DNA of 64,000 bases from Lama glama (Eukaryota), in the NCBI GenBank assembly GCA_028534125.1, contig CM052816.1, positions 101,184,001 through 101,248,000 on the forward strand, written 5' to 3'. This document shows, one piece after another, positions 4,762-53,270 of this stretch. A program made the translations under genes and the position numbers. Every line of letters begins with the position of its first letter. The first letter of the stretch is position 1. A model generated the notes under the pieces. That model saw nothing but the letters and a program-made list of their open reading frames with translations. It was not told where the DNA came from and searched no databases.

Positions 4762-4874
4762 CTGCGGCCACTTCCCACCGGACTGCGCCCGCCTCTTGAT
4801 CTCTTCCACCGTCTTCCTGCGGGAATCCTGGTCTGATCGGGACACGAACACGGGCCGAATGTACTTTATCAGAG
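4762..4874 (-). CDS. LPCAT1: LPCAT1 exon 4 (113 nt)
   Basis: Encodes (T)LIKYIRPVFVSRSDQDSRRKTVEEIKRRAQSGGKWPQ; cag acceptor and gtgtgc donor. Confidence 0.96.
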
Positions 4875-5329
4875 CTGCAAGAGAGGAAGGGGCACTCGGG
4901 TGGGGCAGCGGCCGACGGGGGGCCGCCCACGGCGACCAGGGAGATGTGAGGCTGCAGGCGCCCGACCACGAGGGAGTCGGGGAACCACCGAAGTCCCGTG
5001 GACTCAGACGATGCCAGGGAGCCTGACAACCCCCTGGGCCAGGAGTGACAGCTCCACAGATGACGCATCAGGAGAAAGAGAAGGACGAGGCTGACCCTCC
5101 AGGGAGCAGAGAGCCTTTGGTCACCTGTGTCACCGGGGAAGGCGAGAAAGGCCCAGAACCAGAAGGGCCTGGGGCATGAGGCTTGGACCCCGCCAGCCCC
5201 ACTGTGGGTTGAGCTGTGTCCCTCAGGAAGACAGGCTGACGTCCTAGCCCAGGTGCCAGCTTCTGCAGATGCGGTCAAGTTAAGAGAAGGCTGTCCTGGA
5301 CAGGGGTGGGCCTTCACCAGCGGCTGGCC

Positions 5330-5545
5330 CCAGAAGAAGGGAGACGAGACGGACACTGAGGGAGAGAGCCCATGTGACAACGAAGGCGAAGACGAGAGAT
5401 GCGGCCACAACGGGGGATGCCCGGGACAGCTGGGGGCCAGCAAAGGCTTGGGGGGACCCGGGACGGATTCTCCCTGGAAACCGACCTGCCCACACCTCGA
5501 TTTTGGGCTCCTGGCCCCAGGGTGGTGAGACAGTGTACATTTCTT
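5330..5545 (+). mobile_element. MaLR (MLT1-like) LTR fragment
   Basis: ccatgtgacaacgaaggc ... cccacacctcgattttgggctcctggcc ... gagacagtgtacatttct resembles an MLT1 LTR 3' half; by eye. Confidence 0.55.
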
Positions 5546-7189
5546 TCTAGGTTAAGCTGCCCGGGCTGCGGCGTCTGTCATGGTGGCCCCGGGACACTCA
5601 CACAGGCCCCGTCCTAAGTGGGCGTGGCAGCCCAGGACCCCCTTGGTGAGGCCGGGGCGCCACCGTGCCAGTCCTCTCGGAGGACGGCTTGAAGGTGGGA
5701 AGGCACTTCCCGGAAGTGGAGACTCTGACCCGACAGTGAGCGGGCCCCGCCCACCTGCCCTGCCCCCGGCCCCGCCTCGCCGTGCCCAGGGCGTGCCTGG
5801 AGCTTCCTTCTGAGCACTTTCACCACTGGCAAGGAGCAGTACTTCATGACTGATTTCTTGGCGGTCTTCCAAAAAGTAAAGAGAAAACATTTTTTAAAAG
5901 AATAAAATTCCATGAAGCTGGGGCCACGGGACTCACAAAATCGAAGGCACATGGACCTGAGTGACGTTTTTTTCTGACGTCTTAAAATACTTCGCTTGCT
6001 CACCGAATTGGAACTGCTTCACCTTTCCTTGCCAACTATTCCTGACGCCGCTCAAAATGACGTGAGAAGGAAAGGGGGCTCGGGGGGAACAGCCCAGAGG
6101 GACAAGGGGACGGAGAAGTAAGTGGCCGGCCAACCATCTCAGGCTCCTCACTGTCTGGCCCGGAGCACGGCGTCCCCTCCTGGAGGGCGGGGGGGAAGGG
6201 GCCTGCAGACGTGGCCGGGGTGGGCTTTACCGGCCAGACCTGGAAGTCTCCCTTTTCTGTCTACATGGCAAAGACGGGAACACTGACGAAGAGGCTTTTT
6301 AAGCCTCTTGGATGAACTGGAAGCTGAAGGCAGAGAAGCAGAAGGGCTCTCTGGGCTCAGGCCGATGGGGAGCCCAGACTGTGCGTCTCGGGTGGCACCA
6401 CACCGGTCCCCACCCTGGAGGACCGTGCACTCTGAGGACAGAAAGGAAACGCGGCCTCGGTCCCGCGAGCCCCGAGCCACGTTTGCAGCAAGAGCTCGGA
6501 CCCCCGTTTTACTAAAAGGAAGCGTGGCAGGCGCTGCCATCAGGACCTGAGCACCAAACTCCAAGGGTTTGTAAATGCAGTGGGCTCTACAGAGAGGAAC
6601 CAGATGATGGAAAAATGGAAAAAGTCACCGGTCTGATCACTCAACTGGCCTTTATAAATCTAACTGTGAATGCATTTTGAATATTTTCAACAATCACCTC
6701 TTCACCAAAGCTGTGAGCTTTCAAAAGGTCCAAAAGTGTCATGCTTTATGGACAAGAGGGACGGCAATCACGATGGCTGGGCCACTGGGGGCCGCTCTGC
6801 ACTCGGCTCAGGGTCAAGTCAGGGGTCAGGACGGCAGCGAGGCTCCCAGAGCTCTGCCTGCCTCCTGCCCAGACAGCCCCGCCCCTGAATCCACCCCGTC
6901 ATGCTCAGCGTGACACACTGGTCACCCGACTTGGCTCAGACTAACAGGTGGAGAGGCCGGTGGGCGAGGACGTGGGCAGCACAGGCTGGGCCAGGCAGGG
7001 GGATTGGGGAGACGGAGCCCCAGGGAGAAGAAGCGGGAACAGGTGGGCCGACCCCTGAAAGGCAGCCTGAGCAGTGCTTGCTCGGCCATGGCGCGGGGTG
7101 CAGGGCATGGGGCTTGGGAAGGCATCTTCCCTGAAGAGCGAGGGGCACACAGACGGCCGCAGTGTGGTGGACCTGGGGCGCCCAGAACC

Positions 7190-7440
7190 CGCGACGCGAC
7201 CTCAGCTGGAAGAAAGGCTCTTTGCGGATGGAATTAATGAGGGTCCGGAGAAGGCGTCACCCTGGATAATCCCATGACAGGTGTCCTTGAAAGAGACACG
7301 GACACACACGGAGGAGAAGCCATGTGACGGTGAAGAGATGGAGAGGAGGCGGCCCTGAGCCCAGGACGCCTGGGGCCCCACGAGCCTCTGACGGGAGCGC
7401 AGTCCTGGCGCCCCCGGGTGGCAGCTACAACTAACGCACT
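7190..7440 (+). mobile_element. MaLR (MLT1-like) LTR fragment
   Basis: ctttgcggatggaattaa ... ccctggataatccc ... gtgtccttgaaagagacacgg ... gccatgtgacgg; by eye. Confidence 0.55.
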
Positions 7441-7739
7441 GGGACAGTTACTGAGCTGAGCCCGGCCTCTGGAACTTCTGTGTAATAAGGTAACGCGCTC
7501 GTATCAGAATCTGAAGAAGCATTTCAGCACATTACAGCCGAGGGCACTTGTGTGCTAGTAAGAAAGACCACAAGGGTATTACAGAAGTCACAACAGAGAA
7601 CAGGGACGCAAGGCCAGGCGCCGACTTCACGTGGGCGGATGTGACCTGCGTGGGTGCGTGCTGTCCTGTGCTGTAACCTGCACTGGCCAGAAGTGGGGGT
7701 TCCCTCCCAGCAGGATGGGGGCTCGTGCTCTGGGGCGGG

Positions 7740-7895
7740 GCTTACCCACTCCCAGTTGGGGGGGCTCACTCACTCCCAGCGGGGGGGGCGGGGGCTCACT
7801 CACTCCCAGTGGGGGGGGTGGGGGGCTCACTCACCCCCAGCAGGGGGGGCTGGGGGCTCACTTACTCCCGGCGGGGGGGTGGGGGGCTCACTCAC
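7740..7895 (-). repeat. ~30-bp minisatellite (5-6 units) made of copies of the exon 3 splice donor
   Basis: On the minus strand the unit is ggga-gt(g/a)agtgag-C-rich, with GT at 7895, 7865, 7834, 7803, 7773 and 7745. Confidence 0.9.
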
Positions 7896-8110
7896 TTCCC
7901 CATATCGGGATGTCTCTGCTCTCCGCCTTCATCACGATAGAGGACATTGTCATGGTGACGGGGATGGCATCGAAGTAGGAGGAGTGTGGTGCCAGGGTGA
8001 GGATGGCGGCCTCGGAGGGCAGTGCCTGCCGCCCCTTCACAGCCACGTGGTGGAAGCCGCCGGCGAACCACATGGTGCGCATGATGGCCCTGAGCAGAAC
8101 GTCCACGACC
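7896..8110 (-). CDS. LPCAT1: LPCAT1 exon 3 (215 nt), catalytic HxxxxD motif
   Basis: Encodes VVDVLLRAIMRTMWFAGGFHHVAVKGRQALPSEAAILTLAPHSSYFDAIPVTMTMSSIVMKAESRDIPIWG; cag acceptor and gtgagt donor. Confidence 0.98.
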
Positions 8111-9059
8111 CTGCAACAGAAGCGCCACGTCACAGCCAGGCTGGCAGCAGACGCACCCTGATCCCCACAGCCCGGCAGGGGCCACGCCAACTCGAGGAGA
8201 ACCGGGCCGGGGCCCACCCATCCGGCGCGTGGTCCAGGCCAGCCGGACCCGCCGGCGCGGTCACCGAAGCGTCCCGAGCAGGGAAGGAGAGGAGCTGCAC
8301 GCTCTTCCCTCTGGCTGTTTAAACATGCCTGGGACGACTCTCTCAGTCAGTCAAGGAAACCGAAGCTGGCTCTGCCACGTGGCACCCACCGCAGCTCGGA
8401 CACGGCAGGGACCCTGAGGCAAAGAGCGGGGCCCACAGCCAGATCAGAGAGATGAGACTGTCAAGGGACTGATCAGCATTCTAAGCGTCTAAGTTTTCAA
8501 CAGAAAATCATCATTAACACCTAAAACACATAACGGGACGTGGAGAGGCAGTTGGCGGGGGTCAGGAGCAGAGACCTGTGGGCGAAACTCCCCAACCTCA
8601 GTTCCCACGGGCAGCCTGACGTCCCCGGATGCAGGCGCGATGCTGTCTCCTGCCACGTGGCCCTGCGTGTGCAGCCACCTCGTGCCCCTGTGGTTGGGGC
8701 CCATCCACAACAGGCCCAGAGCAGCCCGCTATTGCCCAGGGTGATGCAGGCAACGGCGGGAAAGCCACCAACATGAGGGAGAGTGGCCTGTGGGGGCCAA
8801 GAGGAGGGCGGCAGGGCTGGCCTCCACCACCTGGCCTTCCTGCGTCATTCTGGCAAAAGTGAGAGAACTCACCCCGTCCCCAGCGAGCGCCCACAACCAG
8901 CCCTGCCCAGCTGAGGTTTGTCACCCTCTAGTGAGGGAAGTAAGAATTTTTAAAAATTAGTGAATTATGGACACTAAGTTAAAAAGAGACATTGTCCATG
9001 AAAAGGTGAAACAGGAAGGAGAGAGAGGTGAGGAGGATCAGAACAGAGAGGAGGCGGCT

Positions 9060-9620
9060 CAGGATGAAGTTGTGGGGCAGGGCTGAGGCTGCGCACTCTA
9101 GGTGGGGCTCATGCCACAGGGAGGACAGCCATGCAAAGGCCCTGAGGCAGGGGCACCCTCAGTGGGGACAGAGTGGGGAGGAGGACAGCGGGAGGGGCGG
9201 CACGTCTTGGGGGCCTGGTGGGTGCTGAAAGGCGCTGGGGATGCGGACGTGGGCGCCCCCGCAGGGCTGAGCACGGAGGGGAGCTGTGCCCCGAAGCAGG
9301 TGTGCAGGAAGCAGGAGGGCAGCTGGCAGGCTGTTCCGGGAACTCAGGTGAGTGACAATGGGGGGTGGGCAGAGCGGAGGGATCAAGGGCCTTCTGAGGG
9401 CAGTACAGGTGGGAGGCGTGAGGTGGGGGGTCCCAGTGAGGAGGGTGGAGGAGTGGCTGTAGCTAGAACAGGCAGGGACATGGGAGCCAGCTGTCCAGTT
9501 CAGATGCATTGAGCTGAGGTCACCCACAGACAGACAAGCTCGGGGTTTGGCGGGAGGAGAGCTGCTGGCTCATGGACGGTGGTCGGTGTCCCAGACCTGG
9601 ACGAGCTCACCAGGAGAGCA
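9060..9620 (-). mobile_element. L2 (LINE2) remnant
   Basis: gacagccatgcaaaggccctgaggcagg and tgtccagttcagatgcattgagctgagg resemble antisense L2 hallmarks; by eye. Confidence 0.5.
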
Positions 9621-10249
9621 CAGGATACACGAAGTCGGGGCCGGGGGGAGGGAGAAGCAGAGTGATGGGGAGAGGTCCAGATGGGGAGAGGTCCAGGAGC
9701 CCCCGACACCTCGCCTGGGGCACGACTGCGGAGGCCTGGGCCCCCGACCAGGCAGGTGTGTGAGCCATGCAGCCCGGGCCCGGCCCACCTGGGACTTTAA
9801 GACACAGCAGAGAACACAGACCTGCACGTTTCAAATGGTTTTGCTCTGAAAGGGTGCTCACAGATGGGGCAGGAGCTGGCACTGGGAGGGGTGTGGGCTG
9901 GCCTGTGTGCTGGTGGGACCCCCAACCACCGACATCGGAGAGGGGCCTGGGCCTGTCCTGGAGCAGCGAGGAGCCCGGTGGTCAGTGCCGGGACAGGCCG
10001 GCCAGGAGCAGGGGTGTTCCTGGCTGCAGGCAGGAGGTGATGCTGGGCTGCGGGGCTTCCCGGGGGCAGTTCCAAGCTGAGACACCGGGGAGTGGGGGGT
10101 GGGGAGGGCATCCCAGGAGAGCAGAGAAAAGCAAAAAGCAAGTCCAAGTTCGGGCTGCAGCCTCCTGTGTCCACGCGGCATCCTAGGGTCGCCAAGGAGA
10201 CAGACTCAGATCTGGGGGTGGGAGCCCCACACGGCCACTCGGGCAAGCA

Positions 10250-10530
10250 TCCCCCCAGGTTCCTATGTTGAAGCCCTAAGCCCCCAACCCCCGCTGTGTG
10301 ACTAGATTTGGTAAAAAGGTCCAGTGAGGTCCTGGGGAGGGGCTCTGGTCCGACAGGACCGCTGCCCTTAAAAAAGAGAAAGAGGATGGATAAGAAGGTG
10401 GGTCTGCAGCCGGGAGGAGGTGTCACCAGGAGCCGCGTCTGCCGGCACCTTGATCTCTGACTTCCAGCCTCTAAAACCCTGAGAAATGAATCCCTGCAGT
10501 TTGAGCCCCCCACCTGTGGGACGTGGCCGT
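10250..10530 (+). mobile_element. MaLR (MLT1/MST-like) LTR
   Basis: cctatgttgaagccctaagccccc ... ctgccggcaccttgatctctgacttccagcctctaaaaccctgagaaatgaat ... tttgagccccccacctgtgg. Confidence 0.7.
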
Positions 10531-11074
10531 CACACCGTCCTCCCAGACCGCGAGCTGGCCGAGGGCAGTGCCCACGGGAGCAGCCTGCCTGGCTCAGGGG
10601 TCAGCCTGCTGGCCGGGTTTTGTAAGAAGATGCTGCGGTTTTTACAACACTTTGTGTTTTGAAACATACAGCAAGTGTCTTTTATGAAATTGTGTCATTC
10701 CTCCTCTCACTGAAAACCTAAGATATATTTTTGGAAAGTCTGAATGACGCTTACATGCAGCAAAAAGCCTCCCCAGTGCAGCACCAATCTACTCAAAACC
10801 GCACCGCTGTGCGCGGTGCGAAACAAGGCGCCCCCAGCTGCCGGCACGGTGCCTCCACCCCGGACCCTGTTACTTCAAGCCGGTCTCCTCCCAGCCCCCT
10901 GGGGCTCGAGCCCAGCCGCTGCTGTCTCCGCGTCTCCTCTGAGGAGCTCAGCGCCCGGTGTCTGTGCTCATCTCCCCGGAGACCCGACCTGGCCCAGGGC
11001 CGCGCTCTGAGCTCTCGATGAACACTGCTGCGTGGACACCCCGAGGGCTGCGCCAGGCGGCGGGGACTCAGCGT

Positions 11075-17708: not shown

Positions 17709-18208
17709 NNNNNNNNNNNNNNNNNNNNNNNNNNNNNNNNNNNNNNNNNNNNNNNNNNNNNNNNNNNNNNNNNNNNNNNNNNNNNNNNNNNNNNNNNNNN
17801 NNNNNNNNNNNNNNNNNNNNNNNNNNNNNNNNNNNNNNNNNNNNNNNNNNNNNNNNNNNNNNNNNNNNNNNNNNNNNNNNNNNNNNNNNNNNNNNNNNNN
17901 NNNNNNNNNNNNNNNNNNNNNNNNNNNNNNNNNNNNNNNNNNNNNNNNNNNNNNNNNNNNNNNNNNNNNNNNNNNNNNNNNNNNNNNNNNNNNNNNNNNN
18001 NNNNNNNNNNNNNNNNNNNNNNNNNNNNNNNNNNNNNNNNNNNNNNNNNNNNNNNNNNNNNNNNNNNNNNNNNNNNNNNNNNNNNNNNNNNNNNNNNNNN
18101 NNNNNNNNNNNNNNNNNNNNNNNNNNNNNNNNNNNNNNNNNNNNNNNNNNNNNNNNNNNNNNNNNNNNNNNNNNNNNNNNNNNNNNNNNNNNNNNNNNNN
18201 NNNNNNNN
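17709..18208. other. Assembly gap (500 N) at the LPCAT1 strand switch
   Basis: N run. LPCAT1 is on the minus strand to the left and the plus strand to the right. Confidence 0.99.
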
Positions 18209-34849: not shown

Positions 34850-36100
34850 AGGACACCAGGCGCTGGACTGGCATCCTGGCCGCTAGGCTCCCCCTCCAAC
34901 TCCAAGTAAGAGAGTAAGATCGCAGGTCCGGAGACGTCCCCAGGGCGCCAGCCGTCGGGAGGGGCGGCCACAGTGGAGAAAACGTCTGGGGACAGCATGG
35001 TGGGGGGTGGGAGCACGGGGGAGGGATCGGCAAGACCGGCTCCGCTCGGCGGGATCCCGCGCGCCCGCCGCCCAGCTCCCTCCCGCAGCCCGCGGCTCCT
35101 GCCGGGCCTCGCTGGGCGGAGCGGTGGGTGGGCCGAGGCAGCCCCCAAAGGCGGCCCTGGGGGGATGCAGGCGAGGTGGGAGGGAGACGGAAAACCTCCC
35201 GTCTGGGTCCTCCGAGGCCTGGGACCCAGAGGTGTCCCCGCTGCCACGCGCCCCGGGAGGCGCAGGGCCTCGGGCAGAGCGCGCCGCTGGCAGCGGACTG
35301 GCGCCGCCGCCTCGACCCTGCGGTCCAGGTCCCGGGGGCGGGGTGCAGGGGCGGGGCCGAGCTCGTCCCCCGCCCACCCGGGCGGCCCGCAGGCGGAGCC
35401 AGGGCGGGTGGGCGCCCCCGTTGGCGGGCGGGGCGGCCCGGCGACAAGATAAGAGCCCGGAGCTGTGAGGGACCAGAGAAGGAGCTTTGGTGGACGATCG
35501 GCGGTGGGATCCCAGGCAGAGCCAAGGCCGGGCACGCAGGTGAGGCCGGGCCGCTCCCTTCGCAGGCGTCCCCCGCACAGCCTTCGAGGGCGCCGCTCCC
35601 CACTCGGATCCCGAAGGCTGCGGCCGAGGGGCGCCTGGCAGGGGCGGGCGCCGTCGGGAGTGCCACATCCCGCAGGCGGCGGCGTCTCCAAAAGTGGCCA
35701 ACAGTTGAGGTGCACAGCGCCCCGCAACAGTGCCATTGGCGACCTTAAGGCGATCTGTGGCCGCGCGGCGTGTACACAAGAGGGGGTGGGGGCTGGTGTG
35801 CGCCCCTCGCGGGCCCTCGCCCGGCCCTGCCCCAGCGGGGAGCGGTTCGGGCAGGGGGCGGCTGTCCCAGGCTTCCGTGCCGTGGACTCGGGGGCGGCAG
35901 CTGTGGCTGATTCCGCCCTTGAGCCAGACGCAGCGCAGGGCGAGGCAGACCCGGGCCAGCGGCCCCTGACCGAGCGCGGGTGGTTTTCCCAGGCAGCTGC
36001 TGCCTCTCGCGGGGTTTGGTCTTTGATTTTGAGATGAGGTGGGGCACGGGGTTGCGGGGCGTCCAGGCTGCCTGCAGGGAAGGACCGGAGCTCCGTTTCT
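34850..36100 (+). promoter_or_regulatory. SLC6A3: SLC6A3 CpG-island promoter (no canonical TATA box)
   Basis: Dense CpG; GC boxes at 35402-35436; GATAAGAGCCCG at 35448-35459 matches the human DAT core promoter as I recall it. Confidence 0.8.
35475..35539 (+). other. SLC6A3: SLC6A3 non-coding exon 1 (5' start approximate)
   Basis: Ends gcacgcag|gtgagg downstream of the TAAGA element, resembling the human exon 1 donor context. Confidence 0.65.
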
Positions 36101-48994: not shown

Positions 48995-49494
48995 NNNNNN
49001 NNNNNNNNNNNNNNNNNNNNNNNNNNNNNNNNNNNNNNNNNNNNNNNNNNNNNNNNNNNNNNNNNNNNNNNNNNNNNNNNNNNNNNNNNNNNNNNNNNNN
49101 NNNNNNNNNNNNNNNNNNNNNNNNNNNNNNNNNNNNNNNNNNNNNNNNNNNNNNNNNNNNNNNNNNNNNNNNNNNNNNNNNNNNNNNNNNNNNNNNNNNN
49201 NNNNNNNNNNNNNNNNNNNNNNNNNNNNNNNNNNNNNNNNNNNNNNNNNNNNNNNNNNNNNNNNNNNNNNNNNNNNNNNNNNNNNNNNNNNNNNNNNNNN
49301 NNNNNNNNNNNNNNNNNNNNNNNNNNNNNNNNNNNNNNNNNNNNNNNNNNNNNNNNNNNNNNNNNNNNNNNNNNNNNNNNNNNNNNNNNNNNNNNNNNNN
49401 NNNNNNNNNNNNNNNNNNNNNNNNNNNNNNNNNNNNNNNNNNNNNNNNNNNNNNNNNNNNNNNNNNNNNNNNNNNNNNNNNNNNNNNNNNNNNN
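48995..49494. other. Assembly gap (500 N) in SLC6A3 intron 4
   Basis: N run. Exon order and strand are consistent across it. Confidence 0.99.

Positions 49495-52715: not shown

Positions 52716-53270
<555 letters not shown>

Follow-up and report, generated by a model that had tools for sequence, protein, structure and literature searches.

The 5' splice site of exon 3 in an LPCAT1-like gene is reiterated in a small GC-rich intronic minisatellite, which consists of about five good units of 30-31 bp followed by one or two decayed ones. It forms a significant head-to-tail array in which the first unit lies at the exon-intron junction and the later units repeat donors of comparable strength, i.e., a donor-spanning minisatellite. 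By analogy with human genes that carry similar arrays, we think that this one is a near-neutral minisatellite born of slippage, whose pseudo-donors would be silent or rarely used and which would have no regulatory role of its own; we give this reading a probability of roughly two in three. The arrangement itself has already been published for the human F7, ABCA7, CBS, and IFI6 genes, and the principle is not new. A literature search that combined LPCAT1 with minisatellite, or LPCAT1 with splicing or NMD, returned nothing relevant.

The window, that is, the whole 64-kb stretch of DNA that was analysed, carries exons 2 to 7 of the gene on its minus strand (Table 1). Exon 3 (8110-7896 on the minus strand) translates as VVDVLLRAIMRTMWFAGGFHHVAVKGRQALPSEAAILTLAPHSSYFDAIPVTMTMSSIVMKAESRDIPIWG plus one base; it is preceded by ...ttgcag, followed by GTGAGT, and its translation carries the HxxxxD acyltransferase motif. 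Residues 21-53 of the exon 3 piece 7942-8109 were aligned to positions 1-33 of Pfam PF01553 (E 0.058), and the exon 5 piece to positions 94-114 of the same family (E 4.7e-4), colinear with the exon 3 match. Both matches fall below the cut-off because the pieces are short. For the exon 4 piece, acyltransferase look-alikes were found in the Atlas at 0.87-0.90. The gene is probably LPCAT1 and not a paralogue, given a nearly residue-for-residue fit to the human protein. Intron 3 is in phase 1, because exon 3 ends in A (7896), which forms a Thr codon, A/CT, with the first two bases of exon 4 (CT, 4874-4873).

Table 1. Features of the LPCAT1-like gene and of the array at its exon 3 donor. Positions are those of the window, offsets are relative to the authentic donor, CVs are approximate, and a slash marks the exon-intron boundary or its counterpart in a copy.
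Feature	Position	Strand	Offset	Approximate CV	Remarks
Authentic exon 3 donor, GAA/GTGAGT	7890..7898, GT 7895-7894	minus	0	81.5	
GGA/GTAAGT	GT 7865	minus	+30	75.7	
GGG/GTGAGT	GT 7834	minus	+61	85.4	highest score
GGA/GTGAGT	GT 7803	minus	+92	73.0	
GGA/GTGAGT	GT 7773	minus	+122	73.0	
TGG/GTAAGC	GT 7745	minus	+150	81.5	
Second GTs, 4 nt after the first	7891, 7861, 7830, 7799, 7769	minus		66-75	TGA/GTGAGC or TAA/GTGAGC
In-frame TGA	7888..7890	minus			met on use of any downstream GT; ...IPIWGSE-stop
Unit 1	7874..7903	minus			30 nt; spans the exon-intron boundary, holds the authentic donor
Unit 2	7843..7873	minus	+30		31 nt; pseudo-donor GGA/GTAAGT
Unit 3	7812..7842	minus	+61		31 nt; pseudo-donor GGG/GTGAGT
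Unit 4	7782..7811	minus	+92		30 nt; pseudo-donor GGA/GTGAGT
Unit 5	7758..7781	minus	+122		24 nt; lacks the second C run; pseudo-donor GGA/GTGAGT
Degenerate unit 6	7727..7757	minus	+146, +150		GGA/GTGGGT (+146), TGG/GTAAGC (+150); identity to other units 0.64-0.75
Exon 2	about 13260-13121	minus			same LPCAT1-like gene
Exon 3, LPCAT1-like	7896..8110	minus			encodes VVDVLL...APHSSYFD...DIPIWG and the first base of the next codon
Intron 3	7895-4875	minus			3021 nt, phase 1
Exon 4	4762..4874	minus			acceptor ...ctcttgcag/CT; TLIKYIRPVFVSRSDQDSRRKTVEEIKRRAQSGGKWPQ; donor CAG/GTGTGC
Exon 5	about 3565-3503	minus			same LPCAT1-like gene
Exon 6	about 3250-3190	minus			same LPCAT1-like gene
Exon 7	near 1400	minus			same LPCAT1-like gene

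TRF placed the array at 7759-7896 with a period of 30/31, 4.5 copies, 84-85% matches, and a score of 200-206, and described the same array at a period of 61 with 89% matches and a score of 225. As a control, 200 dinucleotide-preserving shuffles of 5000-10999 were searched for TRF periods of at least 15, and the best score among them was 60. Since the real scores of 206-225 greatly exceed this maximum, the array is far beyond chance. Its units follow the pattern (C)TGGGA/GTGAGTGAG, then C5-7, one base, and C6-8, to which the end of exon 3, TGGGGAA/GTGAGTGAG, conforms. The edge of the array given by TRF, 7896, is the last base of the exon, and the 18-nt core of the unit also matches at 7900 with two substitutions, so that unit 1 reaches about 5 nt into the exon. 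It was the inclusion of these last exon nucleotides in the first unit that led us to conclude that the junction itself was amplified, as had been proposed in the first-pass annotation of this DNA. The same annotation had described the native GAA/GTGAGT and five further donor-like 9-mers on the minus strand with C-rich spacers between them, and all of these were recovered at the offsets given there. Toward the 3' end the identity of the units drops, and unit 6 is followed by a decayed remnant that lacks GT, CCCCCATCCTGCTGGGAGGGAACCCCC, and reaches about 7700. Units 2 and 4 form the closest pair (0.87). All five good units have retained GT and AGT; this may be due to selection or to a young age of the array. 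A scan of the 64-kb window on either strand, with a probe taken from unit 4 (7811-7782), gave no match to the repeat unit beyond the array itself, and a dispersed-repeat origin was ruled out on this basis.

An array in such a GC-extreme, homopolymer-rich stretch could be an assembly artefact, either as a whole or in its exact copy number and C-run lengths, an explanation that we regard as highly improbable. In the best DNA sequencing runs, 0.86 of the sampled 31-mers of 7300-8400 were present, and 0.63 of those of 7700-8110; the missing words (about 16 of 113 and 15 of 41, respectively) come near the number that overlap the array, which is in line with an artefact, and the word totals indicate that the array as written may be absent from the short-read contigs of all runs. 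However, short-read contigs commonly lose C-rich tandem repeats, and the ABCA7 authors met the same problem (PMC5954066). The units moreover differ from one another in ordered ways and decay toward one end, as natural minisatellites do, and 14 DNA runs, which come from seven or more studies and carry four organism labels, contain the flanks of the array. It is unlikely that the array was wholly invented, and errors in the number of units or in C-run lengths in the assembly are plausible; the shortfall of words would fit loss of the repeat from short-read contigs, real allelic differences, or errors of the assembly in C runs or unit count. In four RNA contig runs, 0.16-0.20 of the words of 1101 nt were found, which is about the share of the exon.

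As for its origin, the array would have arisen by replication slippage or unequal exchange between short direct repeats, TGGG(G)A. This direct repeat flanks the first ~25 nt of intron 3 and stands at both ends of the unit, and it would represent microhomology of the sort where slippage duplications start. In at least one later step, two units would have been duplicated together; the better fit of period 61 than of period 30 (89% vs 85%) suggests one such two-unit duplication. We take the end of the exon to be the older sequence, because human LPCAT1 has the same Trp-Gly residues at the end of exon 3 (IPIWG). That an unrelated array should end within a few bases of a donor has a chance below 1%, by a rough estimate that counts about six separate arrays and six recognised donors in the window, and this low chance fits the derivation of the array from the junction. 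The surroundings of the array are ~61% GC, and other GC-rich minisatellites occur in the window. In biological terms, the array is probably near-neutral, a side product of minisatellite mutation where GC content is high.

In order to rank the donors, CVs were calculated in the Shapiro-Senapathy form with a position frequency table, and the values are approximate and serve for ranking only. The table was calibrated on the F7 value of 74; for F7 sites it returned 74.2 and 82.7 for published values of 74 and 82.2, and 84 and 97 for published values of 91 and 100. On this approximate scale the copies score 73-85 compared with 81.5 for the native donor, which the +61 copy exceeds. The native donor has A instead of the consensus G at -1 and is without C/A at -3. 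Its strength (approximate CV 81.5) is ordinary; the mean for authentic donors quoted in the F7 paper is 83 +/- 6 (PMC1557585). Among the 3363 minus-strand GTs in the window, 154 reach a log-odds score of at least 6 bits, the level of the weaker copies, and 56 reach 8 bits. Single sites of such quality are therefore common in the window, and it is the phased repetition beside a real donor that is special. Every donor in the array is a tandem pair of GTs 4 nt apart, the second of which is weaker; if the second GT of the native site were used, it would add GTGA and shift the frame.

Because the repeat unit contains the donor, intron 3 carries four or five extra GT[AG]AGT sites. A transcript spliced at a downstream copy would read AGT GAG TGA after the exon, and the frame-1 translation of this read-through product ends in Ser-Glu-stop. 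This agrees with the first-pass annotation, which had placed a stop two codons past the exon; the TGA, at 7890-7888, occupies intron positions +6 to +8. A stop more than ~50 nt ahead of a later exon junction makes a transcript a target of NMD. Since four or more further exons follow the stop in the window (exons 4 to 7), NMD would apply to the extended isoforms, and the predicted isoform, with its in-frame TGA, is a candidate NMD substrate.

Several genes were reported to hold minisatellites whose first monomer lies across an exon-intron boundary and which thereby repeat the donor within the intron (Borensztajn et al., 2006, PMC1557585). In IVS7 of F7, a unit of 37 bp is present in 5-9 copies, and the authentic site alone is used. 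Minigenes of F7 showed that the most upstream site wins and that the pseudo-sites are functional but silent: downstream sites improved to CV 82-91 failed to compete, sites of CV 100 did compete, and the next copy takes over once the first is inactivated (PMC1557585). The LPCAT1 array is similar to that of F7 in that unit 1 is composed of an exon end and an intron start (4 + 33 bp in F7, about 5 + 25 bp here), in its size, as F7 has five to nine copies, and in that the authentic site heads the row. In contrast, the F7 copies are identical (TGG/GTGGGT, CV 74), whereas the copies described here vary at -2, -1, and +3, and one of them outscores the native site by approximate CV. Splicing of F7 was tested with 50 constructs, while the LPCAT1 array is known here from its sequence.

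The closest analogue in composition is the VNTR in intron 18 of ABCA7, a C-rich repeat with a 25-bp unit, the first two bases of which are the donor of exon 18 (De Roeck et al., 2018, PMC5954066); in a 2026 study, the units of this VNTR were split at GTGAG (PMC13747324). Use of the donor in the next unit retains 25 nt and leads to a frameshift and a premature stop. The resulting isoform accounts for about 2 +/- 1% of transcripts and increases with cycloheximide, and its abundance is independent of VNTR length, which instead raises skipping of the next exon (PMC5954066). Both the ABCA7 and the LPCAT1 repeats are C- or GC-rich, flank an exon directly, and have the authentic donor as the start of unit 1, and in both cases use of a copied donor would meet a premature stop (NMD-sensitive in ABCA7, predicted here). 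They differ in size, with 12 to several hundred highly polymorphic units in ABCA7 and about five units here, and in how the stop is reached, which is by a frameshift in ABCA7 and by an in-frame TGA within the unit in our case. Gene and species also differ, and the two repeats are independent in origin.

If LPCAT1 behaves like F7 and ABCA7, splicing would rely almost exclusively on the authentic donor, the one furthest upstream, and the copies would be cryptic, i.e., silent or active in at most a few percent of transcripts. Transcripts spliced at a copy would end in Ser-Glu-stop and be degraded by NMD. A mutation of the authentic donor would turn the copies into rescue sites, among which the +30 site would take over. 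The number of units would hardly affect the use of the copies. The approximate CVs of 73-85 place the copies below the level at which F7 sites competed (CV 100). The expected silence of the LPCAT1 copies extrapolates findings on human genes to a different gene in a different species. Against this near-neutral reading, the +61 site is stronger than the native one, which has A at -1, and a model based on strength or proximity would predict appreciable use of copies; likewise, IFI6 and CBS, if they are a guide to LPCAT1, speak for use of copies, since both constitutively use the first two pseudo-sites.

The repeat of CBS, c.1444_1467+7(16_21), is made of 24 exon and 7 intron bases, 31 bp in all. 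It spans the donor and has a unit of 31 bp as in LPCAT1, but differs in that its unit is mostly exonic (24 + 7 nt) and present in 16-21 copies. The CBS VNTR is reportedly associated with reduced enzyme activity, as the title of one study has it. IFI6 is donor-spanning likewise and differs in having about 25 pseudo-sites and products that are described as protein isoforms, not as NMD substrates. According to the F7 paper, two pseudo-sites are used in IVS13 of CBS (15-20 copies), and the first two of 25 pseudo-sites are used in intron 2 of IFI6 (6-16); for the donor-spanning minisatellites of LMNB2 and PDGFA, the paper states that the authentic site alone is used, and gives far longer units (100 bp in LMNB2, 81 bp in intron 4 of PDGFA) in 10-18 copies (PMC1557585).

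These genes bear on a different reading, proposed in the first-pass annotation, according to which the copies would compete as decoys, drawing a meaningful share of the LPCAT1 pre-mRNA into a PTC isoform and hence NMD, with repeat number setting the level of LPCAT1 expression. We consider this unlikely, even though each copy is a plausible donor with a strength near that of the native site, or above it at +61, and the stop two codons past the exon would make every extended isoform an NMD substrate. Copies can indeed be spliced in ABCA7, CBS, and IFI6, and the reduced enzyme activity said to go with the CBS VNTR points the same way. On the other hand, use of the second-unit donor in ABCA7 is only about 2% and does not depend on repeat length (PMC5954066), the authentic site alone is used in F7, LMNB2, and PDGFA, and F7 sites of up to CV 91 failed to compete (PMC1557585); the LPCAT1 array is also short, with five units. 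The best-studied analogues thus appear to speak against a copy-number-dependent decoy as it had been formulated, and a copy-number-dependent NMD switch at LPCAT1 is unsupported. Some probability stays with the decoys, chiefly since +61 scores above the native site and copied donors are in use in IFI6 and CBS. With a very low probability, the LPCAT1 copies might even be used often enough for repeat number to tune the mRNA level via NMD; if this were true, repeat number would act as an inherited rheostat on the expression of a surfactant-lipid enzyme.

It is also conceivable, although in our judgement very unlikely, that the extra U1-binding sites are helpful, bringing U1 snRNP, in the manner of an intronic enhancer or a back-up, close to a donor whose exonic half (GAA) is weak. 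Exon 3 would then be defined more strongly, or the 3-kb intron would undergo less premature cleavage and polyadenylation. Such help would suit a native donor that departs from the consensus at -1 (G) and at -3 (C/A), and the units hold GGG and C-run motifs. Motifs of this kind near donors are bound by hnRNP H/F and by PCBP/hnRNP K proteins. In F7, moreover, the copies act as functional spares when the first site is inactivated (PMC1557585). At LPCAT1, however, a spare donor would yield a truncated protein alone and cannot rescue function, because of the in-frame stop at 7890-7888. The native approximate CV of 81.5 is also ordinary against the mean of 83 +/- 6 (PMC1557585), and no sequence feature sets this explanation apart from neutrality.

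The plus strand was described in the first-pass annotation as having runs of up to 8 G and, with them, G-quadruplex potential. Runs of 5-8 G are indeed present on this strand, but the quadruplex does not follow in its canonical form: within 7700-7900, the motif of four tracts of at least three G gave no match with loops of 1-7 or 1-12, and matches need loops of up to 16 nt. The side claim holds in a weak form only. The G-rich plus strand is the template DNA strand of the gene, and the pre-mRNA carries C runs. The predicted MFE of the array RNA was not below that of shuffles (z = 0.22), and there is therefore no unusual fold to account for. The predicted unpaired fraction was 0.17-0.22 at +61, +92, and +122 compared with 0.47 at the native donor. 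RNA structure was rejected as the cause of silent copies, given the z of 0.22 and a lower accessibility of the copies that is too weak.

If the array is polymorphic, it would provide a natural allelic series for testing how rows of nearly equal 5' splice sites are resolved, and such a series would separate a preference for the most upstream site from selection by strength or proximity. Here one of the downstream copies outscores the authentic donor, an arrangement that the F7 work had to build by mutagenesis (PMC1557585). The array also calls for caution in annotation, as the exon 3 donor may be put in the wrong place, or coverage lost, by gene predictors and short-read aligners.

Some further features of the window may be mentioned. 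An LPCAT1-like first exon was sought in the ORFs near the CpG-rich kilobase 35001-36000, and none was recognised there. This kilobase is CpG-island-like (GC 0.76, CpG observed/expected 0.79) and lies ~22 kb upstream of exon 2 on the strand of the gene, and it is a candidate for the promoter or first-exon region. Three blocks of exactly 500 N are found at 238-737, 17709-18208, and 48995-49494, and the last of these accounts for the apparent low-GC bin at 48-50 kb. At the boundary of intron 2 and exon 3 (8088-8129, minus strand), TRF reported two copies of a 22-nt repeat with 81% matches and a score of 52; here the end of intron 2 (~20 nt, with the acceptor, TTCTGTTGCAG/G) is similar to the start of exon 3 (~21 nt, TTCTGCTCAG/G). 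The repeat leaves an acceptor-like AG inside exon 3, 21 nt in and in frame. It probably arose by chance, because its score of 52 is within the range of the shuffles (maximum 60 in 200). Another GC-rich minisatellite, with 5.2 copies of a 25-bp unit or 2.6 copies of 50 bp at 94%, occupies 53119-53247, and its unit contains the donor-like CAGGTGGGC.
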